DNA of 64,000 nt from the sequence record LC765218.1; one strand, given 5' to 3'. Below, piece by piece: positions 7,489 through 55,837 of the stretch. Every line of letters begins with the position of its first letter. Within the stretch, counting starts at the first letter, position 1. A program made the translations under genes and the position numbers. The notes under the pieces were generated by a model. That model made no database searches, was not told the origin of the DNA, and worked only from the letters and a program-made list of their open reading frames with translations.

Positions 7489-9714
7489 ATGAAAGACCTT
7501 AAATCTCTGTTCAAAGTGAACGGCGACCGCGACCTGACTCGTTTCTCCATGGAATCCTTCCTTGGTAAACTGGACCTGGAAAAAGACTACGGCGACAGCA
7601 TCCTGTCCGCTGGTAGCAAACTGATTAGTAAGATCGGTCTGGAAAACTTCGGCCAACTGAGCGACGAAGATGCTCAAAGTGCTGCTGGTATGTACGCTAG
7701 CCTGCAAAAAGTTGCCCGTCAGTGTGGCTTCGAATCCTTCGAAGGCGCTAACAGCCGTGTAGGCGAAAACCAACTGTCCGCTGCCACCATGGCTGCCCTG
7801 GCAATGTCCAACTCCACTGAGTACGTTAAGGCTCTGAAACAAGTTGGTAAGAAAATTGCTTCCACTGACAAGAACGTCATTTCGGTTGAACACCGTTTCG
7901 ACGGCCCGGCTGGTTCGATCCAAACTTTCGAAGCTGCTGCTGGCGTCGGTCTGGAAAACTACAACGAGAAATCCCAGCGTGACTTCCGCGTTGTGACCGT
8001 TGGTTATAACCTGGCCGCTTCCCGTCAGGATGAGTTCGCTGAGCGTATCTATCCGACCACCGTTATCAACCCGATTGAAGGTGGTGTTGTTCAGGTTCTT
8101 CCGTACATCGCGGTAATGAAAGACGTTTACCACGCTGTTTCCGGTCAGAAGCTCGACAACCAAGAAGTCAACATGGTTGAAGCCTATCGTGATCCGTCCA
8201 TCCTGGACGACGAGTGCACTGCACTGATCCCGGCTATCGATCCTGCTGGCACTAACCTGAAGTACTTCGCTGATCCGGCTCTGCTGCCTCCGGTAACCGT
8301 TATCAACGAACAAAACATGTCCATCGAAACTGCTCCGCTGAAGCCGGGCGTTAAACTGGACCTGATGGGTAACTCGAACGCCAACCTGCTGATCAACAAA
8401 GGCATGCTGGACATTTCGGATACCATCGATCCGTCGGGCCGCCTGAAGGCTCTGTACGTTAAGTTCCAAGGTAAAGTCATCAAGTTCCAAACTGAACGTC
8501 TGCCGCGCGCAGTGTTCCAGCCGGACCTGGTTGGTGATACCCGCGGTGCCAAGATCGACTTCTGGTCGGATGACCTGACTGTTTCGGCCGTAACCCGCAC
8601 TACTGACGCTGCACAAACTGCTGGCATGAAAGAACTGGAACAACGTAAGTGGGTTCTGCGTCTGAGCATGCAATTCAGTGGTCACATCAGCCTGAGCCGT
8701 GGCGATAGCCGTTTCACCATCGGTGAAGTAACTATCGATCGCATCCTGGACGAAGACAAGCGTCGCATCGACCTGGAAACTGGCGATGGTAAAGCTCTGG
8801 CCGACAGCATTGGCGAAATGGAAATCGTTGGTTTCGACCTCGACACCCGCTTCACCAACACTAACCGCCGTCAGCGTGGTCACCTGCTGCAAACTCGTGC
8901 CCTGCAATTCCGTCACCCGATTCCGATGCATGCTCCGGTTACCCTGCCGCTGAGCACCATGGACGAAGAAGGTCCGGGCGAAGTTGTTAAGGCTCTGACT
9001 GTCAACACCAACATCCGTAACAGCAACAACGCTGTTAAGCGCCTGCTGAACTACCTGGCTCAGCTGAAAGAAGTAACCGCTAACGGTTTCGACCGTCCGC
9101 AGTTCGGTGCTGTTGAAGGTGCTCTGTCCGCAGTAATGCGTCCGACCTACCGCTACAAGAAGCTGCACCTGCCTGACATGATCGACACCCTGAAGTCGCA
9201 AGACCGTTGGGAAGACGTCTGCTCGGCAATCCTGAACGCTGTTAAAGGTGTACTGTTCCCGGCTTACCGTGAATCCAACATCGAAGCAGCTTTCCGCGTG
9301 ATCTCCGGTAACCAAGACGAGCGTCCGATGTTCCTGTTCTGCTCGGACAAAGAGATCGCTAACTACCTGATGACCAAGGGCGACGATCGTACCCTGGGCG
9401 CTTACCTGGAATACGACCTGGTATCGACCAACAACGAACTGTTCGACGGCAAGCTGGTAGTGATTCCGACCCGTAAGACTCCGCAAGAGAACGACATCCT
9501 CAGCTTCGGTCAATTCTACTACGTATCGACCGTAATCGCCGACCTGCCGATCACCCGTGGTGGCCAGCAAGTTACTCGCGAAATCGCTGCGATTCCGTTC
9601 AACCTGCACGTTAACAACATCCCGTTCGCTCTCGAATTCGACGTTACTGGCTTCGAAGAAGTGATGGGTGAGTCTCAGTGGAACAAGCCCCTGGTTGAAG
9701 CCGTAAAAGGTTGA
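7489..9714 (+). CDS. Major capsid protein precursor (phiKZ gp120-like)
   Basis: 741 aa with extreme high-expression codon bias; N-terminal propeptide with repeated S/G-X-E protease sites; size and position match phiKZ gp120. Confidence 0.93.
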   Translation: MKDLKSLFKVNGDRDLTRFSMESFLGKLDLEKDYGDSILSAGSKLISKIGLENFGQLSDEDAQSAAGMYASLQKVARQCGFESFEGANSRVGENQLSAATMAALAMSNSTEYVKALKQVGKKIASTDKNVISVEHRFDGPAGSIQTFEAAAGVGLENYNEKSQRDFRVVTVGYNLAASRQDEFAERIYPTTVINPIEGGVVQVLPYIAVMKDVYHAVSGQKLDNQEVNMVEAYRDPSILDDECTALIPAIDPAGTNLKYFADPALLPPVTVINEQNMSIETAPLKPGVKLDLMGNSNANLLINKGMLDISDTIDPSGRLKALYVKFQGKVIKFQTERLPRAVFQPDLVGDTRGAKIDFWSDDLTVSAVTRTTDAAQTAGMKELEQRKWVLRLSMQFSGHISLSRGDSRFTIGEVTIDRILDEDKRRIDLETGDGKALADSIGEMEIVGFDLDTRFTNTNRRQRGHLLQTRALQFRHPIPMHAPVTLPLSTMDEEGPGEVVKALTVNTNIRNSNNAVKRLLNYLAQLKEVTANGFDRPQFGAVEGALSAVMRPTYRYKKLHLPDMIDTLKSQDRWEDVCSAILNAVKGVLFPAYRESNIEAAFRVISGNQDERPMFLFCSDKEIANYLMTKGDDRTLGAYLEYDLVSTNNELFDGKLVVIPTRKTPQENDILSFGQFYYVSTVIADLPITRGGQQVTREIAAIPFNLHVNNIPFALEFDVTGFEEVMGESQWNKPLVEAVKG

Positions 9715-9798
9715 ACTGGAAAGGGTACCTTCCGTAAGCTTGAAAATGGTACTACCCGTTATCTTGAAGACGGAGTGGCCCGCCGCCTAGAGCGGTAA
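9715..9798 (+). other. Putative stop-codon readthrough extension of the capsid protein (TGKGTFRKLENGTTRYLEDGVARRLER*)
   Basis: 27 in-frame sense codons after TGA; last 21 aa are 11/21 identical, ungapped, to the C-terminus of CDS 36051..36584; no independent start codon or RBS. Confidence 0.7.
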
Positions 9799-17210: not shown

Positions 17211-17260
17211 ACAACATAAAGCCCTCTCCTTCGGGAGAGGGCGATATGCTTTATTTTTTT
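17211..17260. terminator. Bidirectional CATA/TATG-arm hairpin between convergent units
   Basis: ACAACATAAA-GCCCTCTCC-TTCG-GGAGAGGGC-GATATGC followed by a T-tract. Confidence 0.85.
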
Positions 17261-17688
17261 TATTTCTCGAAACTTAATTCAACTTGTGAAGTTGGAATGT
17301 AGGCTAGAGAACGAGTAGTGGGTTTTAAAATAACCGTATTACCAGTTAGAGGACCATCTAGGAATTCATCAGTATCGACGGGTACAGTCACTTTATCACG
17401 GAGTACTTTAATAACATCATGGATAGTTGAATAATCAATTCTCTTCCCTGGAATAACAACCCCATTGAGAGCTTCTTCAATTCGATATCGATTAAAGAAT
17501 ATTTGTTTCTGTCCTTTAAAATACTTGCTTGTCCCAACAGCCTGAATAGTAGCTCTTGAGTTATTACCGTTCTGCAACCATATTTCAATACCAGTCCAAA
17601 TAACATCCTCAGGACGAATAGCTGGATCCAACTTGTTCTGAATACTAAACTGTTGGAGTAGTTTAGATTTCATGTTTTTAACGTGCAT
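17260..17688 (-). CDS. Putative virion structural protein, Y/F-x-R-L-x-L paralogue family
   Basis: NNSRATIQAV...YFKGQKQIFFNRYRI pattern shared with the CDSs at 17698, 36051 and 54263. Confidence 0.65.
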   Translation of the reverse strand: MHVKNMKSKLLQQFSIQNKLDPAIRPEDVIWTGIEIWLQNGNNSRATIQAVGTSKYFKGQKQIFFNRYRIEEALNGVVIPGKRIDYSTIHDVIKVLRDKVTVPVDTDEFLDGPLTGNTVILKPTTRSLAYIPTSQVELSFEK

Positions 17689-17697
17689 CTCTACTCC

Positions 17698-18576
17698 TTA
17701 GTTATAATGAATTCTAATTTCGCCAACGACATCCTGACATAAAGTTTTATGTAACTCGATAACAAGTACATTTTGTATATCAGTACGCCCACTAAATCGA
17801 GGTAGTACAATGCCATTATAAATGATCCTGTACTTTAGAACCCCTATTTCTTCAGTATAAGCGATGTTGTGAGAAGCTGGTGTCTTTGATGCTGTCCAAG
17901 GTTTATTCGTCACCTCAGCGAGAATAGCGGCCATCTTCTTAGGATCTGGATGGGTACCAGCCTTTGTTAGATGACGAAGATACTCTCTATGTTCACTAAA
18001 GTCATATCCAGTGATGTAATAAGTACCATTGATCAGTGAAAGATCATTAGCTTTAACATTGTCAGGTTTACCTACGTCAGGGAATTCAACTTTACTGAAA
18101 GTAGATAATTCCTTTCGTAGCGTATTAATCAAACGAACCCGAAGAAAACCTACAAAACGAAGAGACTTTTTATTCGCATGGAGAATGAATTCTTGGTTGA
18201 ATACATTATACTCGGTATGTTCGAAATCATCTACATCAAAAACAATGTTATTTAACTCGGATAATTTTTCGACAACCTTTAAACTGGAATATGGAGTATC
18301 CACATTCGATAAATCAAGCACTTGGGTTTGTCTAAAAAATGTCGTCAAATCTAATCGATCGTACGTATAAGTATCGAGTTCGACTTCCGGTAGTAAGTTA
18401 CCGGAAGCCTTACTGCGATTTACACTTATAACAATACGAGTCTTGGTACCACCCAGTGATTCGAACTGTTCAAGCTTAGTACTACCCGGAAACAATTGGG
18501 TAAAACAAGCATCGTTGATCATGTCGATTATAGATGTCCAAGGAGTAGACTGTAAATAGTCTCTCGTAATGTACAT
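17698..18576 (-). CDS. Putative virion structural protein, Y-x-R-L-D-L paralogue family
   Basis: IIDMIN...TKTRIVI...TYTYDRLDLTTFF; co-oriented with the baseplate gene. Confidence 0.7.
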   Translation of the reverse strand: MYITRDYLQSTPWTSIIDMINDACFTQLFPGSTKLEQFESLGGTKTRIVISVNRSKASGNLLPEVELDTYTYDRLDLTTFFRQTQVLDLSNVDTPYSSLKVVEKLSELNNIVFDVDDFEHTEYNVFNQEFILHANKKSLRFVGFLRVRLINTLRKELSTFSKVEFPDVGKPDNVKANDLSLINGTYYITGYDFSEHREYLRHLTKAGTHPDPKKMAAILAEVTNKPWTASKTPASHNIAYTEEIGVLKYRIIYNGIVLPRFSGRTDIQNVLVIELHKTLCQDVVGEIRIHYN

Positions 18577-32781: not shown

Positions 32782-33270
32782 ATGTATAAACATTACGACC
32801 CCCTTACCGAAGAGGAAGTAACTACTTTAGTAGACCTCTCTCGTAAGGTTAAATATAAAGACTCGTATGGCTCTCGTTGCCGTATCGGTAAGAACAAAAC
32901 CAAAGCACTGAGTATTTACAACTATTCTAAGTGGTTTGATTGGACATCTAAACAACGAGATATCTTCAAGGTTGGTTTTAGTGAAGATATCCAAAATAAA
33001 GCTGTTCAAGGTTGGTTCCTAGATATTCCAGCTGGTCGTGGTTTCCTCGATCAGATGACAACGTGGGTCAATAAAACTGGTGCAGGTACCATCGTCGCAA
33101 CTGCATTAAAAGATAGACAAGCCATTCAACTTAATGGACGTTTGATCGAACTTCGTAAAGGTGAACAGATCGCCTTTAACCTTAGTACAGTTCACGCGAT
33201 TCCTAAATCCGACCATGGTCAGTTGTGGGCATGTGTAATGATACGTGGTGACTTCCAACAGTACACCTAA
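32782..33270 (+). CDS. Divergent jelly-roll (2OG-oxygenase-like) protein lacking HxD
   Basis: GWFLDIPAGRGFLDQM...GEQIAFNLSTVHAI...WACVM parallels the neighbour's layout, but the first His is absent. Confidence 0.55.
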   Translation: MYKHYDPLTEEEVTTLVDLSRKVKYKDSYGSRCRIGKNKTKALSIYNYSKWFDWTSKQRDIFKVGFSEDIQNKAVQGWFLDIPAGRGFLDQMTTWVNKTGAGTIVATALKDRQAIQLNGRLIELRKGEQIAFNLSTVHAIPKSDHGQLWACVMIRGDFQQYT

Positions 33271-34839: not shown

Positions 34840-35334
34840 ATGTTCAACTGGTTAAAAAACATCAAGTGGTTTAATTGGGTGTTTATCGGTATAGTTATTA
34901 CCGGTGGGCTTGGACTGTTGTTCTTCTATAACCAGTATACTGATCAGCTTGTACACAATGGCAGTTTAGTTGAGAAAAATGGTCAACTAGAAGTCAAAGT
35001 CGAAATGCAGGGTAAGTCAGCTGCCATCACTGATGAAACCGTTACTCAGTATACCACTCAAAAAGTCGATGAGCTGAGAGAGCTGGAACAATCACGAGCA
35101 GGAGTGATTGATGAGTACATTAACTTATCCGGACAATCTGGGGTCAGTTGGCCTACTACAGAAAATGTCCCTGTGGAAAAAACTAGGGATGAACCTATTC
35201 GGAAAAATCCCACCACCGCCATTAAAGATAATGGTAGTGTTACTGACGATGTTGCTCTTATCACCCTTGCTAATAGGATGTACGAGCACTACTGCAAAGC
35301 CAAGCGGCTGGACCCGCAGTGCGGTACCAAGTAG
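34840..35334 (+). CDS. Putative inner-membrane spanin (i-spanin, Rz-like)
   Basis: N-terminal TM helix (WVFIGIVITGGLGLLFFY), helical periplasmic domain, C-terminal Cys pair; overlapped by a lipoprotein gene. Confidence 0.7.
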   Translation: MFNWLKNIKWFNWVFIGIVITGGLGLLFFYNQYTDQLVHNGSLVEKNGQLEVKVEMQGKSAAITDETVTQYTTQKVDELRELEQSRAGVIDEYINLSGQSGVSWPTTENVPVEKTRDEPIRKNPTTAIKDNGSVTDDVALITLANRMYEHYCKAKRLDPQCGTK

Positions 35335-35581
35335 CTTTACTCAACTTTGCTATGTAGCTCCTCCACCGTCAGCTGACGATCTCATCAATGCACCTAGTCG
35401 GTATAAAGTAGCTGGGATCACTGATCCATGGGAAGCTCGTTTCCTATTGATGACAGATCACTGGTTATTACAGACTGACTATCTCGGTTCGTGTAATTTG
35501 CAAATCGAGAAGCTCCGTGACTGGGATAAAAAACAGTCAGAGATGGAGAGAAGCTATGACTCTGGAAAAAATATTAAGTGA
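35189..35581 (+). CDS. Putative outer-membrane spanin lipoprotein (o-spanin, Rz1-like)
   Basis: Alternative frame overlapping the 3' part of the i-spanin; lipobox LLIG-C (Cys codon 35279); Pro-rich then helical; start could be 35165, 35189 or 35231. Confidence 0.7.
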   Translation: MNLFGKIPPPPLKIMVVLLTMLLLSPLLIGCTSTTAKPSGWTRSAVPSSFTQLCYVAPPPSADDLINAPSRYKVAGITDPWEARFLLMTDHWLLQTDYLGSCNLQIEKLRDWDKKQSEMERSYDSGKNIK

Positions 35582-35960
35582 CCTTGGCGATAAGCCTTTG
35601 TCGAAAGCTCCTAACTATCGTCAAATCGTAGCATACTTGAACGGTATGTTACATGCAGATGGTAGTGCACGTGTTAATGGGAATACAACTGCCGATGAAG
35701 TATTAACTGAGATCTATTCTCTTTCTGATCTTGAAAAGCAGTCGAAGCTTCTCGAAAAAGAATACACTGGTGTTAGAGCTAGTGATACTTACCGCAGTTC
35801 TATTTTAACTGCAAGTGCCTTGTTAGCTATACTGTCCACTGGTGTAGTGATGAGTGTTATTAACACTGATGGTCCAATGACTTCAGAAGTAGCCGATATC
35901 TTTAAAACTTTAGGTATGGGTCTTATTGAAATCATTAAGATGGTAATTTCTACTCAGTAA
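35556..35960 (+). CDS. Membrane protein, holin/antiholin candidate (134 aa)
   Basis: ATG 35556 after GGAGAG; C-terminal hydrophobic segments ILTASALLAILSTGVVMSVI and LGMGLIEIIKMVI; lies between the spanins and the endolysin. Confidence 0.5.
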   Translation: MTLEKILSDLGDKPLSKAPNYRQIVAYLNGMLHADGSARVNGNTTADEVLTEIYSLSDLEKQSKLLEKEYTGVRASDTYRSSILTASALLAILSTGVVMSVINTDGPMTSEVADIFKTLGMGLIEIIKMVISTQ

Positions 35961-35970
35961 CAATAATATT

Positions 35971-36000
35971 AGCCCCTCCTTAAGTGGAGGGGCTTTTATA
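35971..36000 (+). terminator. Hairpin terminator
   Basis: AGCCCCTCC-TTAAGT-GGAGGGGCT-TTTATA. Confidence 0.75.
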
Positions 36001-36050
36001 ATGCTATGTGGGTTAAGTAAATTTTGTAAACCACAATTGAGGGTTTAACA

Positions 36051-36584
36051 ATGAGCGATCGTTTTCCTTATAACCTCCCGTCTCGTGCGGCACTCTGCCG
36101 TTTGATTCGGGAAACGTCTAAACACAAGAATATTCAGGACGAGTTTGTAAACTTCGAAGATATGTTCTTCAGTCCTACTTCTGGTGTTCCGGGGCGTACT
36201 TATATCGAGATGATCGATAACAAAGCTAGTCTAAAAGACTGGTTCGTTTATCGTCGTCTGGAATTGTCTCACCCTGATTGTCTTGGACCTAATCCGTCTA
36301 TTAAACTATCTGGTGTAGCTACACCTGCGGCCATCGCAGAAGAGATCAACCGTTCCCGTAAGATGACATTCGGTCCGGACGATCTATCCTTCTCTACCAC
36401 TGTCATTAATACCAAAGACGACGTATTCGAATATGAACTCGTTGCAATGACTGGTAGTTACGCCTACTTCGGTTCGACTATCGTTACGATCGAAATGGTT
36501 GAAGGTAACCAATATGCACGTCTACTTGAGGATGGTGGTTATCGTCTAATGGAAGACGGCTTGATTCGTGAGCTGGAACATTAA
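36051..36584 (+). CDS. Virion structural protein (phiKZ gp143 position) with C-terminal RLLEDG repeats
   Basis: Y-R-R-L-E-L family domain; ends RLLEDGGYRLMEDGLIRELEH; TATG at 36005 and RBS GAGG upstream. Confidence 0.8.
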   Translation: MSDRFPYNLPSRAALCRLIRETSKHKNIQDEFVNFEDMFFSPTSGVPGRTYIEMIDNKASLKDWFVYRRLELSHPDCLGPNPSIKLSGVATPAAIAEEINRSRKMTFGPDDLSFSTTVINTKDDVFEYELVAMTGSYAYFGSTIVTIEMVEGNQYARLLEDGGYRLMEDGLIRELEH

Positions 36585-36601
36585 TTACTGGAGACAGACA
36601 A

Positions 36602-37381
36602 ATGGGTACTGTACTCAAACGTGGCGACCGCGGCTCTGCTGTGGAAGATCTACAAATGAAACTTCGAGTCGCAGGATACGCAGTTAGCGCTGACGGAATC
36701 TTCGGTGGAGATACAGAGAAAGCTGTTCGTGATTTCCAAGCTTCTAAAGCTTTGGTGGTTGACGGAAAAGTTGGACCTGCTACTCTAGCTGAACTAGCCA
36801 AATCCGCTACTGTTCCTGCTAAATGGGAAGCTATCCCTTTCCCAACAGCTAATAAATCTCGGTCGGCTGCAATGCCCACACTGAATGCGGTTGGAGCAAT
36901 GACTGGTACCGATCCTCGGTTACTCGCTACATTCGCTTCCATTGAGTCTGCTTTTGATTACACTGTCAAAGCATCCACATCTTCGGCTACTGGTTGGTTC
37001 CAGTTCCTTGATGCTACATGGGATGACATGATCAAAGCACATGGTTCCAAATACGGGCTACCTAAAGATCCCACTAGGGCACTCCGTAAAGACCCACGTG
37101 CAAATGCATTAATGGGTGCAGAATTCCTTAAAGGAAATGCAGCTGTATTACGTCCAGTAATCAATCGCGAACCGAGTGATACAGACTTGTATTTGGCACA
37201 TTTCCTTGGTGCTGGCGGCGCTAAGAAATTCCTATCCGCAGATCAGAAAACTCTCGGTGAAGTTCTATTCCCGAAACCTGCTAAAGCAAACCCGTCGATC
37301 TTTAGCAATAAAGGTGTACCACGTACCCTTGCAGAGATCTACAAGCTGTTCGAAGATAAAGTTTCGAAACATCGGGCATAG
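36602..37381 (+). CDS. Modular endolysin: peptidoglycan-binding domain plus lytic transglycosylase (phiKZ gp144-like)
   Basis: LKRGDRG...DGIFG...DGKVGPAT PG-binding repeats; FASIESAF catalytic Glu, SATGWFQFL and YLAHFLG motifs as in gp144. Confidence 0.95.
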   Translation: MGTVLKRGDRGSAVEDLQMKLRVAGYAVSADGIFGGDTEKAVRDFQASKALVVDGKVGPATLAELAKSATVPAKWEAIPFPTANKSRSAAMPTLNAVGAMTGTDPRLLATFASIESAFDYTVKASTSSATGWFQFLDATWDDMIKAHGSKYGLPKDPTRALRKDPRANALMGAEFLKGNAAVLRPVINREPSDTDLYLAHFLGAGGAKKFLSADQKTLGEVLFPKPAKANPSIFSNKGVPRTLAEIYKLFEDKVSKHRA

Positions 37382-37512
37382 CGTCCACCTGTTCTTTTAA
37401 CGGTGGTAACACTTAGAAAAGGATTTTGTTAACCTGATACTTCCCCAGGTTTGAAGGTGGTATTATCAGGTTAAAAGAATATGTGCAACGCAGCCAATCC
37501 TGAAGGACATCT

Positions 37513-38532
37513 ATGATGGCTGAAGAAAAGAAAAAGGTTTCTGAACTCGATTTTCTGTCTGGTCTAACCGGACAGGAATTCGTAGAGGTTGTTGCTCGCG
37601 ATACAGAAGGTTCTTATAAGAACTATCGTGTACTCGCAGATAAATTACGTGTAGGCGCTTCTGCTTTTGATGGCGCTGTCAAAGCTGGTTTTGTCGGTAC
37701 TGAAGAAGAATGGTTAGAAACACTCGTTGGAAAATCTGCGTATCAAATCGCAGTTGATCAGGGTTATGAAGGCACTGAAGAACAATGGGTTTCTGCAACC
37801 AATCCTCTATTTGAGATCCTTCCAGAAAATGCTGGTATGGTACTCACTGTAAATGAACTAGGTCTTCCAGAGTGGAAAGTAATTGACCTTTCGTTTGCAA
37901 ACTTAGATAAGGTCGATAATACAGCAGATGCTGATAAACCTATTTCTCGTCAGCAGAAGAAAGAACTTGATCGAAAGCTTTACATCAAAGATGCACCGAG
38001 TGCGGTTATGTCCACTCTACAACAAATCGGTGTAGTTGTTTCTGAAGATGGTAAAGAAGTATCGTTCGATGAAGGGCGTGCCACAGAAGTCAGTGAACTG
38101 CTTCTACAACATCGTCGCGGCTCTGCTCTAGAAGCGGCAGCTTGGACAGGCAAAGAAGGAACGTTCTTTGTAGATCTTGAGAATAAGAAGCTTTATGTTC
38201 ACGATGGCGTTACTGTCGGTGGTGCTCAGATCGGTGGTCTAACTGCCGCTGAAGTACAAGTCATCATCGATGCAGGTATTGCTATCGATAAAGTTACTGG
38301 ACTGGTTGATGCTCTTGCTAAGAAAGCAGATCTCGATGAGGACGGTAAACTGAAAATAGAACAGCTTCCTGAACTGGATATTCCGACTAAGGTTGATGAA
38401 GCTGCTGTCATTGCTGGTGAGGATGATACAGGCTTTGCTACTGCTAAAGGTATTCATGCACTTCTGGACGCCATTGGTTTTACCAAAGACGAGAATGGTT
38501 CTTGGAAACTCGATCCAGCCGTTGTGGCGTAA
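37513..38532 (+). CDS. Fibre-like structural protein (KVSEL N-terminus, KSAY repeats, Mtd_N-like segment)
   Basis: KKVSELDFLSGLTGQEFVEVV N-terminus; 2 KSAY-type repeats; LQHRRGS...GTFFVDLENKKLYVHDGVTVGG segment; TATG at 37480. Confidence 0.75.
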   Translation: MMAEEKKKVSELDFLSGLTGQEFVEVVARDTEGSYKNYRVLADKLRVGASAFDGAVKAGFVGTEEEWLETLVGKSAYQIAVDQGYEGTEEQWVSATNPLFEILPENAGMVLTVNELGLPEWKVIDLSFANLDKVDNTADADKPISRQQKKELDRKLYIKDAPSAVMSTLQQIGVVVSEDGKEVSFDEGRATEVSELLLQHRRGSALEAAAWTGKEGTFFVDLENKKLYVHDGVTVGGAQIGGLTAAEVQVIIDAGIAIDKVTGLVDALAKKADLDEDGKLKIEQLPELDIPTKVDEAAVIAGEDDTGFATAKGIHALLDAIGFTKDENGSWKLDPAVVA

Positions 38533-38572
38533 ATAAAATAGTCGCAACTCCAGATAGATGCTCTCCTGAAAA

Positions 38573-38610
38573 GGCATACTGGAGTCCCCTTTGGGACTCC
38601 TATATGTTGC
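38573..38610. terminator. CATA/TATG-arm hairpin element
   Basis: GGCATACT-GGAGTCCC-CTTT-GGGACTCC-TATATGTTGC. Confidence 0.75.
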
Positions 38611-38699
38611 TAAAATAATACACTACTCTATGAGTCTTATTTTCCTTTTAAGACGTGCACGAGTAGTTGCGAAGACTCTCTCCAACAAAGGAATACGTA

Positions 38700-41168
38700 A
38701 TGGCCATTAAATCCAGTCCGGGTATGATCTCCGGAATGCAGCCTCTTAACACCATCACAGGTGAAGAGTTTGTAGAAGTTATCCGTCTTGAGGCAGATGG
38801 TTCTTATAAGAACTTCCGTCTCATGGTTTCTAAAATCCGTAACAATGAAGGCCTATCGGCTTATGAAGTTGCGGTAAAGAATGGTTTCGTAGGCACTGAA
38901 ACTGAGTGGCTCGAAAGTCTAAAAGGTCAAGGTATTTATCAGCTGGCTCTTCAACAGGGCTTCGTAGGTACTGAAGACGAATTCCTCGCCTCTCTTAAAG
39001 GTGAAGACGGCGCAGATGGCGCTGTAGGTAAATCCATCTATGAAGTTGCCGTAGATAACGGCTTCACTGGCACTGAACAAGAATTCCTTGCAACTCTCGT
39101 CGGTAAGTCTGCCTATCAATCCGCTCTTGATACTGGTTTTACCGGTACCGAGGCCGAGTTCATCCAGTCCCTAAAAGGTGACAAAGGCGATGCCGGCGAG
39201 AAAGGTGATAAGGGCGATAAAGGCGACCAGGGTGATCAAGGTAAGTCCGCTTACGATCTAGCTGTCGAAGCTGGTTTCACTGGAACCGAAGCTGAGTACC
39301 TGGAATCTCTCCACGGTATCGACGGTACTAAAGGTGATGACGGTATCGATGGCGCTGACGGCAAATCTGCTTACGAGCTAGCCGTAGCAGCCGGTTTCGT
39401 TGGTACTGAAGAAGAATATCTCGAAAGCCTACACGGTGCTGATGGTAAGTCTGCTTATCAGATCGCTCGTGATAATGGTTTCGTTGGTACTGAAGAACAA
39501 TGGCTGGAAAGCCTAGAAGGCGCTAATGGTAAGTCCGCATACGAATCCGCTGTTGATGGTGGATACGTCGGTACTGAAGAAGAATTTAACCTGTCGCTTG
39601 CCGAACCGAAAGGTGTAAATGGTGGCGTATTCATCACTGATATCACTCCGGTTAATGCCGCTGATAACGTCGGTGAGAAGGTTAAGTCCGCGGATAGTTT
39701 CTCTCTGGTGCAATGTTCTTCGTCTACTCGTGACGTTAAAGTTAAAGTGGCTGCTATTACCGGTCATACTAACTATCGTCCTGTCGTTAAAGTTAACGGC
39801 GTAGATGTATCTCTCGTCGCTGGTGCAAATGCCCCGATGTGGACCGGTGAAGTAACTATTAATCTGCCTGAGCCGGTTGGTAGTGATCCCATTAAGGTCG
39901 AAGCTGTTCACGAAGATGGTGCTAAGGCATCTACTGATGTAATCATGGATACCGCGCCGGTTGTAACTGCGGCTACATTTACAGGTGAATATCCTGGTTC
40001 TCAAACCGAGCTGAAAGCAGGCGACACAATGTCGATCACTTTCACCACTGACCAAGATGTGGTAGGTTATGAGATTCGTGATGAAGGTGCATTCGTAGCA
40101 CGCAATGGTACACTGACCGCCGGTAAGACTCACAGTCTGACTGGTCTGGTTATTGCTGACCGTGGTAACACTGCTACTAACCAACCGTTCAGTATCCGCG
40201 TTAAGAAAGCCTCCGGTAGTTTCTCCGCGTGGTATAAGTCCGACGTAGCTGGTACTACTGAGAAAGTCAACGTTGTCAAGCTGAACAACCTGAAACCGAC
40301 GATTACATTCGGTGCTGTAACTTATCCGGCTGGTCAAACTGCCATTAAAGCTGGTGAAGATGCAACCGTTGCTAACACTGTAACTAACGCTACTAGCGCT
40401 ACTTACACCTCGGCTAATGGTCAGCTGACTGTAACTAACCCGACTCAGATTGAAGCAAACAAAACTGTTTCTTACCTGACTGGTAATTACAACGACCTGA
40501 CTAATAACCTGACAATCACTGCACAACGTGCTGCTAACGGTAGTTCGTCTACTGCATCGACAATCGTTAAGATTGCTAACGGTGCCCCTGAACTGACTGT
40601 TACCACTCCTGCCACTCGTCTGCGCTCCGGTGGTAATGCAGGTACTGTTGTACAGCGTCACACCATCACTATCACTTCGACTCAATCGCTGGCTGAAGCC
40701 CCTGTGATGACTGCTCCTGGCGGTAACTGGGATTCTGCTGGTTGGGTGGGTGATGCAGCTAAGAAAGTATGGACACGCACACTGCTCGTTCATGATGATG
40801 ATGCTAAAGGTATCTTCAACTTTACCGATGTTGTAGCCAAAGGTCTGGCTGGCGTTACAGTCAATACCCTTAAAGCTGGTGGCGAGTATACCCTTGGTGG
40901 CTTCGTTCTTCGTACCATGTCTATCGCTGCTTTCCCGAATCGTGAAGGTGCTATTGGTACAGATGTAGTTATGACTGGTAAACTTCGCTGCACTAACCTG
41001 TCTAAGGGTGCTAGCGGTTCTCTTAACTTCACCTATAAAGCTGACGATGCTGATGCTGTAAATACTTACACCATCAAGAATAGCAATAGTTGGTATAACT
41101 GCGACGCAGCTAACGCTGTATCTAACACATCCGGTCTGATGCGCGTCGAACTTGAGGAAGTTGTATAA
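38700..41168 (+). CDS. Fibre protein with KSAY repeats and Ig-like C-terminal domains (phiKZ gp145 position)
   Basis: ATG 38700 after AAGGA; N-terminus paralogous to CDS 37513; 8 GKSAYxxAVxxGFxGTExEWLESLxG repeats; Thr-rich beta-sandwich region. Confidence 0.8.
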   Translation: MAIKSSPGMISGMQPLNTITGEEFVEVIRLEADGSYKNFRLMVSKIRNNEGLSAYEVAVKNGFVGTETEWLESLKGQGIYQLALQQGFVGTEDEFLASLKGEDGADGAVGKSIYEVAVDNGFTGTEQEFLATLVGKSAYQSALDTGFTGTEAEFIQSLKGDKGDAGEKGDKGDKGDQGDQGKSAYDLAVEAGFTGTEAEYLESLHGIDGTKGDDGIDGADGKSAYELAVAAGFVGTEEEYLESLHGADGKSAYQIARDNGFVGTEEQWLESLEGANGKSAYESAVDGGYVGTEEEFNLSLAEPKGVNGGVFITDITPVNAADNVGEKVKSADSFSLVQCSSSTRDVKVKVAAITGHTNYRPVVKVNGVDVSLVAGANAPMWTGEVTINLPEPVGSDPIKVEAVHEDGAKASTDVIMDTAPVVTAATFTGEYPGSQTELKAGDTMSITFTTDQDVVGYEIRDEGAFVARNGTLTAGKTHSLTGLVIADRGNTATNQPFSIRVKKASGSFSAWYKSDVAGTTEKVNVVKLNNLKPTITFGAVTYPAGQTAIKAGEDATVANTVTNATSATYTSANGQLTVTNPTQIEANKTVSYLTGNYNDLTNNLTITAQRAANGSSSTASTIVKIANGAPELTVTTPATRLRSGGNAGTVVQRHTITITSTQSLAEAPVMTAPGGNWDSAGWVGDAAKKVWTRTLLVHDDDAKGIFNFTDVVAKGLAGVTVNTLKAGGEYTLGGFVLRTMSIAAFPNREGAIGTDVVMTGKLRCTNLSKGASGSLNFTYKADDADAVNTYTIKNSNSWYNCDAANAVSNTSGLMRVELEEVV
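38850..39600 (+). repeat. Eight tandem KSAY repeats of about 25 aa with short collagen-like spacers
   Basis: Directly visible in the translation; boundaries approximate. Confidence 0.9.
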
Positions 41169-44100
41169 TGGCTGGTGAATCCGCATTTGAAGTTTTCGTT
41201 AACGGTGAGTTACCAAAACGTATCTCCACCGAAGACAATCCTCTTGAGGTAGTTGCAGGCAAGATCCCGGTTTCGACCGGGGCTGGCCTGGCTACAACTT
41301 TCAAAGACCCGACCGAAATCGAGGGAATGAAAGGTGAGGATGGCGCGGATGGTAAATCCGCTTATCAGCTGGCACTCGATGCTGGCTTTATTGGTACTGA
41401 AGCCGAGTGGCTCGAATCGCTGAAAGGCGAAGACGGCGCTAAAGGTGATACTGGTCTGCAAGGTAATCCTGGTGAACCGGGTCCCGTTACCAATATCAAA
41501 GGTACCGTAACTCTTGACGATTTCGAAACCAACATTGCTCCCATCGATAGTTGGGAATTTGGTGATGCTTGGTTCGTTCGTTCTTCCACTGCTACTGTAC
41601 TGAAAGTATGGTCTGCCCCAGAAACCGGTTCGCCGGATGCTGGCCAGTGGATCGACTCCGGTGACATGCGTGGTCCGGAAGGTACTGGTCTTGTTATTCG
41701 TGGTCAATGGCCTGATAACCAAGAACTTCCGCCCTTGGCTGCCAAAGGCGATACCTACGGTTGGAAAAATGCTCTTTACACTTTCATGCTTGTAGCTGGT
41801 GAAGAAGATATCTTCCCTGACAACTATGCATACATCCAGATCGTGCCGATGGGTCCTGAGGGTCCTAAAGGTGATACTGGTGCCAAAGGTGATAAAGGCG
41901 ACCGTGGTCTGAAAGGTGACACTGGTGCACCTGGTAAGGACGCTACTCCGTTCACTATTAAAGCTGACTTAGCTTCCGAAGATGATCTGCCTCTGGCTGG
42001 CGATGCCAAGCCTGAAGAAGCATATTCGGTTATGGTTGACGATGTACGCCATCTATTCGTCTTCTCCGTCGATGAAAACCGCTGGATGGATCTCGGTACT
42101 TGGCAGGGCCCGAAAGGTGAACCTGGTCAAGACGGTATCATCGGTGGCGACGGCCCGAAAGGGGACAAAGGCGATAAGGGTGATAAAGGCGATCCTGGTC
42201 AAGATGGTATCGATGGTCAAGACGGTGCTCCTGGTGAAAACCTGGAAATCCTCGGTACGTATCCGACCATGGCAGATCTTCTGGCCGCAGGTGCTACTCT
42301 TGTCATCAAGAAAGCTTACGCTGTTCGCGATGTTAACACCCTCTTCTACGTAGCTACTACTCCTGTTACCTCTGAAGGCGACCTGATTAACCTAGGTCAA
42401 TTCAAAGGTGAGAAGGGCGACAAAGGGGATAAAGGTGACAAAGGGGATACCGGTGCAAAAGGTGATAAGGGTGACACCGGTGACGGTGGTAAGAACCTGG
42501 TTGTCTCCGGTGTTCTTCCTGACCTTGCTGCCATTCAAGCCGTACCTGATCCGCAAGAACAGGAAGCTTGGGTAGCTGCCGATAACCGCCACCTCTACAT
42601 GTTCATTGATGGAACATGGGTTGACCTTGGTACTCATACTGGCGCCAAAGGCGATAAAGGGGACAAGGGCGATAAGGGTGATACTGGCGCCAAGGGTGAC
42701 ACTGGTGATAAAGGCGACAAAGGTGATCAGGGTGAAAACTTTGAAATCATCGCTGTTGTTGACACTGTAGGTGAAGTTCCTCCGGCCACTGCCGACAACA
42801 AAGGTAAAGCCGTTGTTGTTAAAGGCGGCGATGTTTATGTAAACATTAGTGGTACTCAGTTCGTATCTGTTGGTCCCATTGGCCAGAAAGGTGATCAGGG
42901 TGATCGTGGCGCCTCGATGCGCATCGTTGGTGAAGTAGGTTCTGTTGAAGCTCTACCTGAACTGGTAGCCGGTGAAACTGATCCCGCTGATGGCGAGGCG
43001 TACATTGTTACCGTTATCCAGGGTGATGACACCATTAAGGTAATCTACGTAGCTAACCGCTCTACGAATACCTACGATGGTCCGTTCAATATCCAGGGTC
43101 CGCAAGGTAACGATGGTCCGCAGGGTGAAGTAGGTCCTCGCGGTGAAATCGGCCAAGGTATCAAAATTGTTGGCGACTATCCGTCTGAAGCTGCTCTTAC
43201 AGCTGCTCATCCGACTAGTGCTATTGGTGATGCATATTCGGTTGGTCCTGAAAACAGTAAAGAACTGTTTGTTTGGGCTGTCGATGGTGCTGATGATACT
43301 GAGAAGTATCTGAACCTGGGTAGCTTCACCGTTGGCGCCAAAGGCGAAAAAGGTGATAAGGGTGACCAAGGTATTGTTGGTCCTCGCGGTATTCAAGGTG
43401 CAAAAGGTGATAAAGGTTCTCGTTGGGTAATTCTACCGAACGGTGTCGATATCCCGAATAACACTATTGGTACTCAAGATGACTGGTGCCTTGATAAGTC
43501 TGGTAAAGTTTGGTATCGTGACGCAACTGGCTGGAAAGAATTCATCCAACTTCTGGATGTTCCTGTAGCCGAAGTAGAAACTGCCGATCAGAACAAGAAG
43601 ATGGTTCGCTATCAACTTGGCTGGGCACCTCTACTGGTCGATGAAGTGGAAACCCCTGAAGAAGGTGAACAGTATATCCGTAAGGGTAAAGCTGATGGCA
43701 CCACCGAATGGGCTCCGCTTGAAGTAGATGCTGTACCAGACGTTCCTACTCCCAACATTGCTCTTGCAATGGTTCGTAAGGACGGTGAGTGGAAACAAGG
43801 TGCACCTATTGTCATTGCCAACGATGTTGATAAGCATTACGTTCTGAAGGGTAAGGCTAGCTGGGTCGAAACCGATGTCTTTAAAGACGCGGCTAGCGAT
43901 GGTAAGTCTTACGCTCGTAAGGATGGTGCTTGGGCTGCGGTAGTACCTGAAACTACCAATGATGATAAACTGTACGCTCGTAAAACTACTGTTGCTGGCG
44001 TGTCCAGCTGGGTAGAGGTACCGGCTGCAATTATCGCATCGGATGCTCCGGATGCCAAGAACTACACTCGTTCTAACGGTGAGTGGAAAGAACTGGTAAC

Positions 44101-44491
44101 CATTCCGGAACCAGGTATCGATGCTACTAAAGTTTGGGGTCGTCAGACAACTGCTGCTGGTACATCGGCGTGGGTAGAGATCAAGAAAGAATTTGATACC
44201 TACTCCCTGCTATCTGGTGCTGCTCCTGCTGGTAACTTCACCATCACTCCGGCTAACCAACAGTGCTATACTGTTCCATCTACTGCTGCTCGTACTATCA
44301 CTCTAGGTGATGGTCCGTCTGGCCGAATGATTACAGCTGTACTGGTTCTAACTGGTACGGTCATTCCGACCTTCAGCGGTAACTTCAAATGGAATGATAA
44401 CACGGCTCCTGAAGCTGCTGCAACCAAGACTGTCATCACCCTTCTGTGGGATGGTAGTGAATGGCTCGGCGCTAAAGGTGCTGGCTACTAA
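41168..44491 (+). CDS. Collagen-like fibre protein (phiKZ gp146 position)
   Basis: 1107 aa; many G-X-Y tracts (GDKGDKGD...) alternating with small globular repeats; foldon-like array; C-terminal domain; TAATG coupling. Confidence 0.88.
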   Translation: MAGESAFEVFVNGELPKRISTEDNPLEVVAGKIPVSTGAGLATTFKDPTEIEGMKGEDGADGKSAYQLALDAGFIGTEAEWLESLKGEDGAKGDTGLQGNPGEPGPVTNIKGTVTLDDFETNIAPIDSWEFGDAWFVRSSTATVLKVWSAPETGSPDAGQWIDSGDMRGPEGTGLVIRGQWPDNQELPPLAAKGDTYGWKNALYTFMLVAGEEDIFPDNYAYIQIVPMGPEGPKGDTGAKGDKGDRGLKGDTGAPGKDATPFTIKADLASEDDLPLAGDAKPEEAYSVMVDDVRHLFVFSVDENRWMDLGTWQGPKGEPGQDGIIGGDGPKGDKGDKGDKGDPGQDGIDGQDGAPGENLEILGTYPTMADLLAAGATLVIKKAYAVRDVNTLFYVATTPVTSEGDLINLGQFKGEKGDKGDKGDKGDTGAKGDKGDTGDGGKNLVVSGVLPDLAAIQAVPDPQEQEAWVAADNRHLYMFIDGTWVDLGTHTGAKGDKGDKGDKGDTGAKGDTGDKGDKGDQGENFEIIAVVDTVGEVPPATADNKGKAVVVKGGDVYVNISGTQFVSVGPIGQKGDQGDRGASMRIVGEVGSVEALPELVAGETDPADGEAYIVTVIQGDDTIKVIYVANRSTNTYDGPFNIQGPQGNDGPQGEVGPRGEIGQGIKIVGDYPSEAALTAAHPTSAIGDAYSVGPENSKELFVWAVDGADDTEKYLNLGSFTVGAKGEKGDKGDQGIVGPRGIQGAKGDKGSRWVILPNGVDIPNNTIGTQDDWCLDKSGKVWYRDATGWKEFIQLLDVPVAEVETADQNKKMVRYQLGWAPLLVDEVETPEEGEQYIRKGKADGTTEWAPLEVDAVPDVPTPNIALAMVRKDGEWKQGAPIVIANDVDKHYVLKGKASWVETDVFKDAASDGKSYARKDGAWAAVVPETTNDDKLYARKTTVAGVSSWVEVPAAIIASDAPDAKNYTRSNGEWKELVTIPEPGIDATKVWGRQTTAAGTSAWVEIKKEFDTYSLLSGAAPAGNFTITPANQQCYTVPSTAARTITLGDGPSGRMITAVLVLTGTVIPTFSGNFKWNDNTAPEAAATKTVITLLWDGSEWLGAKGAGY
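43562..44190 (+). repeat. About eight tandem T4-fibritin-foldon-like repeats
   Basis: For example DAASDGKSYARKDGAW and DAPDAKNYTRSNGEW versus the T4 foldon [16 protein letters not shown]. Confidence 0.75.
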
Positions 44492-54262: not shown

Positions 54263-55837
54263 ATGCGTCAAATTTCTATTTCACTTGCCGATAACCCTAT
54301 CGGTGCTAGTCCATTAGTTGGACTTTATAAAGCGATTAACGCTAAATATTCCAGCCTAGGTCTGACCCAAGCAAACTCTCGGGTTATTAGAGTACAACCA
54401 GCAGCAACTAAAGAAAGACCCAACCAGACAGTAGTGTTTATTCAGAAGGGAACTTCTTATGACACTATTTACGATTTTTATTACGATCGATTTAACCTAA
54501 ACGATTTTATTGAGAATCCATACTGGACGGCTTCTGAAGTTGAAGAACTCCAACAGATGGAGAACTCTACTGAAGTCCTTGGTGAAGTGGCTCGTAAATC
54601 GACTTTGAATTTAACAAAATCAGATATTTGGGTTAACGATACTTCTATCGATTATACCGGTGGACAAGTCGGACCTAACTGGTTATTAAAGTCTATTTAC
54701 AACTCACTGTATTTTACCGGCGAACTAGTTCTTTGGTTACATTCAGGTGGAGATGGTCCTGGTCCAGAGCCTGAACCTACAGATGGGTTCTATGAACATA
54801 TCTTCGAAGGTTCGATCTCTAATTACATTACTGGTACATTTGGTAACCCAGGTTACTATGTATCTCTTAGTGTACAACAGAATGGTAACCGTGTTTATGT
54901 ACTCGAACCAATTCCTGAGGGTGAGAAGGTACCTACACTGAACTGGCCTACCTACCATGAAAATGATCCAGCTACACTTGTACCTGGACATGAATGGATT
55001 ATTATCAATAACTCCGGACATGAGATCACATTTGATCCAGAGGGACTTAGTCATAATAAATTCCTCTTGCCTGCGTGGAATGTAATCGCAGTTAAACAGG
55101 GTGGGACTATTCGTGGTACTGCCATCGGTTGGGATAATAATACCAATCAATGGATTTGGGCAATTTCTGGGGATATTGTTCAAGGTAAAACTGTAGGTAG
55201 TTCTATCATGGATGACTTGATTAGTTGGTATGCCATGGAAGGGATTGCTACAGACTCACACGGCGGTCATAACTTCGGATTTAACTCTGAAAGTACGATA
55301 CCTGGTAAAGTTGGTCAAGCACTAAGTGGTATAAAAGCTTCCGGTGCTGAAGGTAACTTCGGTAGCTATAATAGCGGTACGGCAATGTTTGGTTGGTTTA
55401 AAGTAAATAACCCAACCGTAAGTCAGGAATATGTATTGACTCTTGGTAAGTTTGGCGAGTACTATGGCTGTAAGTACGGCTTATCGTACAGAGGTTCCAA
55501 CGGCTGGAGAGGATTCTCTCGCAATGCTGCTAACACAGAGACTACTGTATCTACTGGCGGTCAACACATGGGTAAAGGAGAATGGCAATTCATCGTTCTT
55601 CAAGTAAAAGATCGATTCCTTGAGATCTATGTTGACAATGGTAATCCGATACGTAAAGAAATTCCATTACCAAGTAGTGGTTCTTATGATGGTCTACAGT
55701 TCGGAGAAATCTTTAGTGATTCCAAGTTTGATGGTGCTGTAGATGAAGTTGGATTATGCTGGCGACCGCTAGAGAAAGAAGAGATCGCGTGGCTATACAA
55801 CAATGGTCAAGGTCGTACTTATGAAACTCTTGTTTAA
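54263..55837 (+). CDS. Structural protein: Y-D-R-F-x-L family domain plus LamG/ConA-like lectin domain
   Basis: N-terminal FYYDRFNL; GPEPEP linker; C-terminal SWYAMEG...TAMFGWFK...WQFIV...LEIYVDNG...FDGAVDEVGLCWRPLEKEEIAWLYN is a LamG pattern. Confidence 0.75.
   Translation: MRQISISLADNPIGASPLVGLYKAINAKYSSLGLTQANSRVIRVQPAATKERPNQTVVFIQKGTSYDTIYDFYYDRFNLNDFIENPYWTASEVEELQQMENSTEVLGEVARKSTLNLTKSDIWVNDTSIDYTGGQVGPNWLLKSIYNSLYFTGELVLWLHSGGDGPGPEPEPTDGFYEHIFEGSISNYITGTFGNPGYYVSLSVQQNGNRVYVLEPIPEGEKVPTLNWPTYHENDPATLVPGHEWIIINNSGHEITFDPEGLSHNKFLLPAWNVIAVKQGGTIRGTAIGWDNNTNQWIWAISGDIVQGKTVGSSIMDDLISWYAMEGIATDSHGGHNFGFNSESTIPGKVGQALSGIKASGAEGNFGSYNSGTAMFGWFKVNNPTVSQEYVLTLGKFGEYYGCKYGLSYRGSNGWRGFSRNAANTETTVSTGGQHMGKGEWQFIVLQVKDRFLEIYVDNGNPIRKEIPLPSSGSYDGLQFGEIFSDSKFDGAVDEVGLCWRPLEKEEIAWLYNNGQGRTYETLV

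Follow-up and report, generated by a model that had tools for sequence, protein, structure and literature searches.

In the 64,000-nt stretch of sequence record LC765218.1 analyzed here (the window), a short peptide of three units built on R-x-L-E-D-G is encoded in two distant places: at the C-terminus of open reading frame (ORF) 36051 and directly after the stop codon of the major capsid protein gene. The record belongs to BRkr, a Pseudomonas phage of the genus Pawinskivirus and a phiKZ-like jumbo phage; the 12 kb between positions 33000 and 45000 agree with BRkr (LC765218) at 100% identity over the same coordinates, and PA1C, PS119XW, and further members of the genus match them at 99% or more. 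The locus raises the question of what partner this peptide engages. The original prediction held that it is a socket for the N-terminal domains of two fibre proteins encoded downstream of ORF 36051, so that one fibre set could attach both through the ORF 36051 protein and to read-through capsid subunits. We tentatively read the peptide as a docking tag for proteins of DUF7941, a phage-specific family, rather than for the neighboring tail fibres. Gene numbers follow phiKZ and were taken from record annotations and synteny. The argument turns on four elements:

7489..9714, + strand: major capsid protein gene (gp120 in phiKZ numbering), ending in a TGA stop (PF25620 PhiKZ_MCP, 7.9e-231)
9715..9798, + strand: in-frame capsid extension of 27 codons, encoding the three-unit peptide (9715-9795) and closed by TAA (9796-9798)
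36051..36584, + strand: 177 amino acids (aa), orthologue of phiKZ gp143; short-form DUF7941 protein with an N-domain and a C-terminal tail (phrog_2935, 7e-43)
36519..36581, + strand: C-terminal tail of ORF 36051, two R-x-L-E-D-G-x-x units and then R-E-L-E-H, with an 8-residue period

The peptide after the capsid stop codon

The capsid gene ends in TGA (9712-9714), and the three-unit peptide follows it immediately and in frame. The tail of ORF 36051 consists of two copies of R-x-[LM]-E-D-G-x-x and a final R-E-L-E-H, with the stop codon at 36582-36584. In a six-frame translation of the window, the tandem motif occurred at these 2 sites and in 0 of 200 composition-preserving shuffles. When all six frames were scanned with the capsid extension, the best non-self match was the tail of ORF 36051, with a score of 52 against a shuffle mean of 35.8 (standard deviation [SD] 3.3), a score reached by 1 of 200 shuffles. 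The claim that the same type of peptide occurs in the post-stop extension of the capsid gene was thus borne out. Because tblastn with the tail peptide was too insensitive for counting copies per genome, a close relative was scanned piecewise instead; in this genome-wide scan of a 99%-identical phage, the tandem motif was found in the capsid extension and the gp143 tail only. A search of 50,697 phage records with the tail peptide returned matches in Pseudomonas chimalliviruses only.

The comparison of capsid genes covered 33 IMG/VR loci and five individual genomes, as well as Goslar and Serratia phage 2050HW (noted loci L031-L064, L007, and L065). BRkr, PhiPA3, 201phi2-1, Phabio, and one phiKZ-type phage all have a capsid gene with a TGA stop, after which 23 to 30 codons encode the motif in frame. 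Across the survey, motif-bearing extensions all stand directly after a TGA, with the exception of L051, where a TAA is followed by an Ig-like (immunoglobulin-like) domain and the motif; capsid genes that lack an extension have a TAA stop in all but one case. The motif is kept in 19 of 19 distinct extension peptides, the extension is stop-free and in frame at all loci of the phiKZ-like clade, and the nucleotide differences among extensions are distributed 95/92/152 over codon positions 1/2/3. Since the motif is kept, the substitutions are of the coding type, and the extension is associated with TGA, these comparisons indicate that the extension is coding. No in-frame start codon belonging to the extension is conserved among the loci compared, and we therefore infer stop-codon read-through, the sole mechanism that fits all loci, as its predicted mode of expression. 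There are no tRNA genes in the window, and none of the seven tRNAs (Thr, Leu ×2, Tyr, Asn, Met, and Pro) of phiLBG22, a 99%-identical relative (L078, 287-298 kb), is a suppressor tRNA, so read-through would depend on host decoding. A terminator-like hairpin lies 3' of the extension. Two metagenomic relatives from IMG/VR, L048 and L051, encode an Ig-like domain (Big_2-like by eye) in frame right after the capsid stop; the stop of L048 is TGA, and that of L051 is TAA, its extension finishing in an R-x-T-E-D-G tail.

The relationship between extension and tail recurs outside the Pseudomonas phages. Goslar has a capsid TGA followed by an in-frame extension of 28 residues, in sequence quite unlike that of BRkr, and the best non-self match of this extension within 50 kb was the C-terminal tail of gp23, the short DUF7941 protein of that phage (score 55 versus a shuffle mean of 35.5, SD 2.9; 0 of 200 shuffles). 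In 2050HW, an extension of 16 residues follows the TGA. Its top match fell in gp047 (0 of 200 shuffles), and third in rank came the C-terminal end of gp049, a protein of 177 aa that matches DUF7941 below threshold and is encoded beside a full-length member of that family. Three R-x-L-E-D-G units make up the tail in the Pseudomonas clade, which sets it apart from the Goslar tail, and neither the Goslar-type nor the 2050HW-type motif has an obvious repeat. Because each clade's extension resembles the tail of its own short DUF7941 protein while the motifs differ, the capsid extension appears to track that tail in three clades, despite the change of motif. A third copy of the 2050HW-type peptide is present in that phage (L065) at ~13428, about 50 residues before the end of gp047; this virion structural protein of 856 aa has no Pfam match.

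Minor coat proteins made by recoding at the end of a coat gene are known from other phages. The RNA phage Qbeta produces A1, a read-through coat protein, from a leaky UGA, and tailed phages extend their capsid proteins by programmed frameshifting, as in T7 10B and the extensions that carry Ig-like domains. As in Qbeta A1 and T7 10B, the sequences of the BRkr-type phages predict a minor, C-terminally extended coat protein displayed on the shell, and L048 and L051 resemble the Ig-like extensions of tailed phages in having such a domain at the same position. In contrast to Qbeta and T7, the BRkr type is a 300-kb double-stranded DNA (dsDNA) jumbo phage whose extension, of ~16-30 residues, copies the tail of another phage protein. 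The C-terminal arm of the phiKZ capsid protein touches the outer protein gp244 at pentons, so an extension would be exposed on the outside there; in Goslar, the corresponding arms come together in a six-stranded barrel in the middle of the hexon. The accessible portions of the phiKZ and Goslar papers on capsid, virion, and lysis do not refer to a conserved extension of the major capsid protein by read-through.

ORF 36051 and the DUF7941 family

ORF 36051 is the orthologue of phiKZ gp143 and a short DUF7941 protein, composed of a globular N-domain and a conserved three-unit C-terminal tail. Its gene has the same position as gene 143 of phiKZ (spanins, holin, gene 143, endolysin), and positions 34840-37381 of the window form a complete phiKZ-type lysis cassette in the order spanin, gp142-like protein, ORF 36051, endolysin. 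The other members are:

34840..35334, + strand: i-spanin, gp141-like, opening the lysis cassette (phrog_7584 Rz-like spanin, 3e-35)
35517..35960, + strand: holin candidate, gp142-like, directly 5' of ORF 36051 (phrog_14484; synteny with phiKZ gp142)
36602..37381, + strand: endolysin, gp144-like (PG_binding_1 and SLT, lytic transglycosylase)

A phiKZ-like homologue (L021) is 49% identical to ORF 36051. An additional ORF at 35108-35581, in the +1 frame, overlaps the i-spanin gene, has a lipobox-like L-I-G-C, and is probably the o-spanin. The gp144 endolysin of phiKZ doubles as a "wedge" component of the neck.

PF25613 (DUF7941) was matched by 42 of 75 homologues of ORF 36051 at E ≤ 0.01 (best 1.5e-10); no other family was matched, and several relatives carry a precomputed PF25613 annotation. 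An AlphaFold 2 (AF2) model built on the homologue alignment reached a mean confidence (predicted local distance difference test, pLDDT) of 88.4 and a predicted template modeling score (pTM) of 0.79. Foldseek found a single significant match to this model in the PDB, the 150-residue chain 9xqd_0 from the phiKZ outer baseplate (E 1.4e-7, TM [template modeling score] 0.64). Its length and entry fit the N-domain (residues 1-150) of phiKZ gp127 as described in a preprint on Goslar, and we take it to be that domain. Alignment of the gp143 family with Goslar gp23 and 2050HW gp049 by hhalign was collinear at low probability (E 0.09 and 0.03, respectively), and because these probabilities were low, membership was decided by the Pfam matches of the homologues together with the fold. 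By the profile matches of its homologues and by this fold, ORF 36051 has a DUF7941 N-domain like those of Goslar gp22 and gp23 and of phiKZ gp126 and gp127. PDB sequence searches with ORF 36051 and with both fibre proteins gave only chance-level matches.

The tail is conserved across the 75 homologues, down to 40% overall identity, with R157, R165, and R173 invariant and the acidic positions nearly so. The DUF7941 match of ORF 36051 ends at residue 147 (profile position 151), and the tail begins just beyond it; in Goslar gp23, the profile extends through the tail. AF2 modeled the tail at a pLDDT of 77-80, with beta-bridges recurring every 8 residues. Pfam searches with the bare peptides (the capsid extension, the gp143 tail, the Goslar extension, and the Goslar gp23 tail) gave no meaningful match, a test without power, because the gp23 tail alone also misses DUF7941. 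We also considered the tail as a cleavage site for the prohead protease and dropped this reading, since the residues preceding its glutamates do not fit the phiKZ protease motif.

Published work places this family in the virion. The Goslar preprint (bioRxiv 10.64898/2026.04.21.720040) names gp126, gp127, and gp143 of phiKZ as DUF7941 proteins and presents AlphaFold 3 models of head-to-tail docking, in which one DUF7941 protomer places the segment beyond its N-domain on the N-domain of the next, gp23 included. According to the same preprint, purified Goslar gp22 forms filaments in negative-stain electron microscopy (EM), and gp23 ranks with the most abundant proteins of the virion, at an estimated ~2,140 copies in each. 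The parts of the preprint available to us anchor DUF7941 proteins at the peripheral baseplate only and do not mention the capsid stop codon. The record annotation of gp228, the 201phi2-1 homologue of ORF 36051, reads "identified as virion protein by mass spectrometry".

For phiKZ gp143 itself, a study of phiKZ lysis (Sci Rep 2026, PMC12894885) names the protein a "lysis regulator" and assigns it a cytoplasmic role in holin timing through its first globular domain. With a phiKZ cassette lacking gene 143, lysis came ~15 min later; co-expression of gp143 advanced holin triggering by ~10 min, and a truncated holin was blocked. AlphaFold 3 paired gp143, via its first globular domain, with the cytoplasmic domain of the holin (PMC12894885). 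Neither the C-terminal tail nor virion association of gp143 is discussed in the accessible parts of that study. In a transposon screen of phiKZ, gene 143 was dispensable, with five insertions, and the putative fibre genes gp145 and gp146 received zero; the structural atlas of phiKZ mentions none of these three proteins.

Candidate partners of the peptide

Apart from ORF 36051, the window encodes three DUF7941 N-domains that are possible sockets, one N-domain-only, one full-length, and one lectin-fused:

17260..17688, - strand: DUF7941 paralogue, N-domain only, 142 aa (PF25613, 8e-8); candidate socket
17698..18576, - strand: DUF7941 paralogue, full-length, 292 aa (PF25613, 2.7e-19)
54263..55837, + strand: DUF7941-like N-domain, Pro/Gly linker, and ConA-like lectin domain, 524 aa (PF25613 1.6e-4, under the Pfam cut-off; Laminin_G_3 1.7e-8)

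The two adjacent paralogues at 17260-18576 are probably the gp126/gp127 pair modeled at the phiKZ outer baseplate. The lectin-fused protein has the architecture that the Goslar preprint (bioRxiv 10.64898/2026.04.21.720040) ties to host recognition, and it is a candidate for a cargo-bearing socket.

We tentatively favor the reading that the gp143 tail and the read-through capsid extension are a common docking tag whose likely socket is a DUF7941 N-domain. A small fraction of ribosomes would pass the capsid UGA, giving each head a few subunits with the C-terminal peptide, and the capsid C-terminus, if placed as in phiKZ, would reach the outer surface at least at pentons. The gp143 tail and the capsid extension would be alike because they engage the same partner, most likely a DUF7941 N-domain bound head to tail, as has been proposed for Goslar gp22 and gp23. 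Chains of gp143, and possibly DUF7941 proteins that consist of the N-domain only or bear a lectin, would then be tethered to the head by read-through subunits, with the number of tethers set by the read-through rate. The N-terminal module of the fibres would be a separate anchor, common to one to three fibres per genome. That the peptide has a docking role and that the rate of read-through sets the number of copies per head can reasonably be inferred. This part of the original prediction survives, given the comparative evidence for a conserved peptide on two carriers; for its choice of partner, the fibre N-domain, there is adjacency in one clade only. A more general version, in which chimalliviruses use programmed UGA read-through to display the docking tail of a short DUF7941 protein on a few subunits, so that heads too carry DUF7941 chains and lectin-type cargo, is possible, although we regard it as doubtful.

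Several observations weigh against docking on a DUF7941 N-domain. ORF 36051 itself scored 13.4 bits against PF25613 (E 0.053), below the Pfam cut-off of 27. The capsid genes of SPN3US, RAY, and KpGz_1 end in TAA and have no extension, and DUF7941 proteins are encoded by RAY and by a marine-type contig, both of which lack the capsid extension. Within the Pseudomonas clade, extensions did not co-vary with the tails of their own phages (matched 45.1, mismatched 47.7, permutation p 0.95). A profile built from linkers of the remaining DUF7941 paralogues in Goslar missed the capsid extension (E 0.82, from an alignment that was partly mis-anchored), and the linker of the full-length DUF7941 paralogue in the window is unlike the tail. 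The likeness is therefore specific to the tail of the short paralogue, and after the Goslar result, we dropped the idea that the extension matches a general DUF7941 linker motif. Given the lack of fine co-variation and a match specific to the gp23 tail, the partner could equally be the capsid or the peptides themselves. The accessible text of the capsid papers on phiKZ and Goslar attributes none of the outer density to proteins of this kind. The sole experiments on gp143 in the accessible literature concern holin timing (PMC12894885), and the gene is dispensable in the transposon screen.

The fibre genes to which the original prediction assigned the peptide follow the endolysin gene:

37513..38532, + strand: fibre protein 1, gp145-like, 339 aa (N-terminal module at ~37525-37665, then S-A-Y..G-F-x-G-T-E repeats and an Mtd_N-like segment)
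38700..41168, + strand: fibre protein 2, gp146-like (phrog_15433; N-terminal module at ~38709-38870, then repeats and a collagen-like stretch)
41168..44491, + strand: third fibre protein, collagen-rich, without the common N-terminal module

The three-unit tail does lie just upstream, past the endolysin, of two fibre genes with paralogous N-termini, as had been noticed: the N-termini of fibres 1 and 2 are 42% identical over 56 columns, and a profile of 28 N-domains matched only these two ORFs in the window (E 6e-22 and 1e-26). Among 1.84 billion representative proteins, only 38 clusters matched the N-module, and those matches that are genuine look like phiKZ-type fibres. In these, the module sits within approximately the first 65 residues; both BRkr fibres fit this pattern, with the S-A-Y..G-F-x-G-T-E repeats next. 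Its distribution is thus narrow and its position strictly N-terminal, on fibres that differ widely in length. As a monomer, it was predicted to form a beta-hairpin with a pLDDT of 58-78, and the AF2 model of the whole of fibre 1 (pTM 0.28) was too poor for a fold search. The order tail protein, endolysin, N-module fibre(s) was found in 21 of 23 IMG/VR loci, all phiKZ-like. The earlier statement that LxEDG peptides often lie near K-I/V-S-E-L domains comes down, as far as tested, to this one conserved block of synteny in a single clade. Fibre 1 is a single 339-aa ORF in BRkr, and many relatives (L011-L017) have an N-module ORF of ~200 aa and an Mtd_N-type ORF of 160-200 aa. In phiLBG22, a deletion in the fibre region leaves a single N-module ORF of 652 aa.

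If the peptide were instead a socket for the N-module of gp145- and gp146-like fibres, these would attach via gp143 and via the read-through capsid, an arrangement that we now consider quite unlikely. Peptide-in-socket attachment of a fibre is known from adenovirus, where the fibre tail sits on the penton base. The fibre model is similar in that a short conserved peptide would fit a site on its partner and bridge a symmetry mismatch; in adenovirus, however, the peptide is on the fibre and not the capsid, and there is no homology. The conserved gene order speaks for such a pairing, and a module that is narrow, strictly N-terminal, and carried by fibres of varied length is what an anchor should look like. 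Three peptide units might also suit collagen-like fibres, which we would expect to be trimeric, and the moderate folding of the monomeric module would suit a need for partners. Because gp143, gp145, and gp146 are all unmentioned in the phiKZ atlas, the model keeps a modest probability. The synteny, however, comes from a single clade and is therefore not independent evidence for the pairing. Goslar and 2050HW have the extension/tail pair, and we did not detect the N-module in the 50 kb scanned in each around that pair. The tail protein of one locus (L029) precedes fibres of another type, and the peptides are identical between phiLBG22 and BRkr, which have one and two N-modules, respectively. 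The proposal that ORF 36051 is a fibre adaptor fared no better: its phiKZ orthologue belongs to the lysis cassette, and a gene that tolerates five insertions next to fibre genes with none does not behave like that of an obligatory adaptor. Finally, the carrier of the tail belongs to DUF7941, for which head-to-tail docking via this very segment has been proposed on the basis of AlphaFold 3 models and filament EM.

The peptides could also bind each other by homotypic beta-assembly, or the gp143 tail could occupy on the capsid shell the site that the extension fills in cis, either of which would make gp143 a head decoration protein. We judge this unlikely, although co-assembly or a common capsid site would require the peptides to be alike, and the 8-residue beta-bridges of the AF2 tail (pLDDT 77-80) are compatible with it. 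The ~2,140 copies of gp23 reported for Goslar would be of the same order as those of the capsid protein, and the six-stranded barrel formed by the Goslar capsid arms at the hexon center also speaks for it; against this, no bound peptide is described in the accessible text of the 3.5 Å phiKZ capsid paper or of the Goslar preprint, and the Goslar-type and 2050HW-type motifs have no obvious repeat. It is very unlikely, in our estimation, that the tail serves the holin-timing role of gp143, with the capsid extension titrating or mimicking it to couple head production to lysis and virion association being incidental. ORF 36051 does lie between a holin candidate and the endolysin, as in phiKZ, and the delayed lysis, the accelerated triggering, the blocked truncated holin, and the AlphaFold 3 pairing with the holin (PMC12894885) all concern this protein, but Goslar gp23 ranks among the most abundant virion proteins, 201phi2-1 gp228 was identified in virions by mass spectrometry, and nothing ties the capsid protein to lysis control. 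Hardly credible is the alternative that the post-stop sequence is untranslated, a relic or transcript-end element whose likeness to the gp143 tail has no function. In its favor are the terminator-like hairpin and the lack of proteomic evidence for an extended capsid protein in the papers searched. Yet the sequence is in frame and stop-free at all loci of the clade, its motif is kept in all 19 distinct peptides with an excess of third-position change, its association with TGA is strict, independent clades have their own versions, and in L048 and L051 an Ig-like domain is encoded beyond the capsid stop without a change of frame.

Implications for nucleus-forming jumbo phages

phiKZ and Goslar are model nucleus-forming jumbo phages whose virions have lately been mapped almost completely, with several abundant proteins of the gp143/gp23 type and the collagen-like fibres still lacking an assigned place. 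In their accessible text, the papers on both phages do not describe coat-gene read-through combined with a copied docking tail of another virion protein. If the read-through extension is made, the head would have a defined attachment point, with the read-through rate acting as a simple dial for copy number. These phages would also be a dsDNA jumbo-phage addition to the few cases of coat-gene recoding, and annotators would be warned that the stretch beyond the capsid stop probably encodes protein. On the more general reading given above, the abundant, so far unlocated virion proteins of the gp23/gp143 type would gain a place on the particle. Because this type of protein is also involved in tuning when the holin triggers, the production of heads and the timing of lysis might be coupled.

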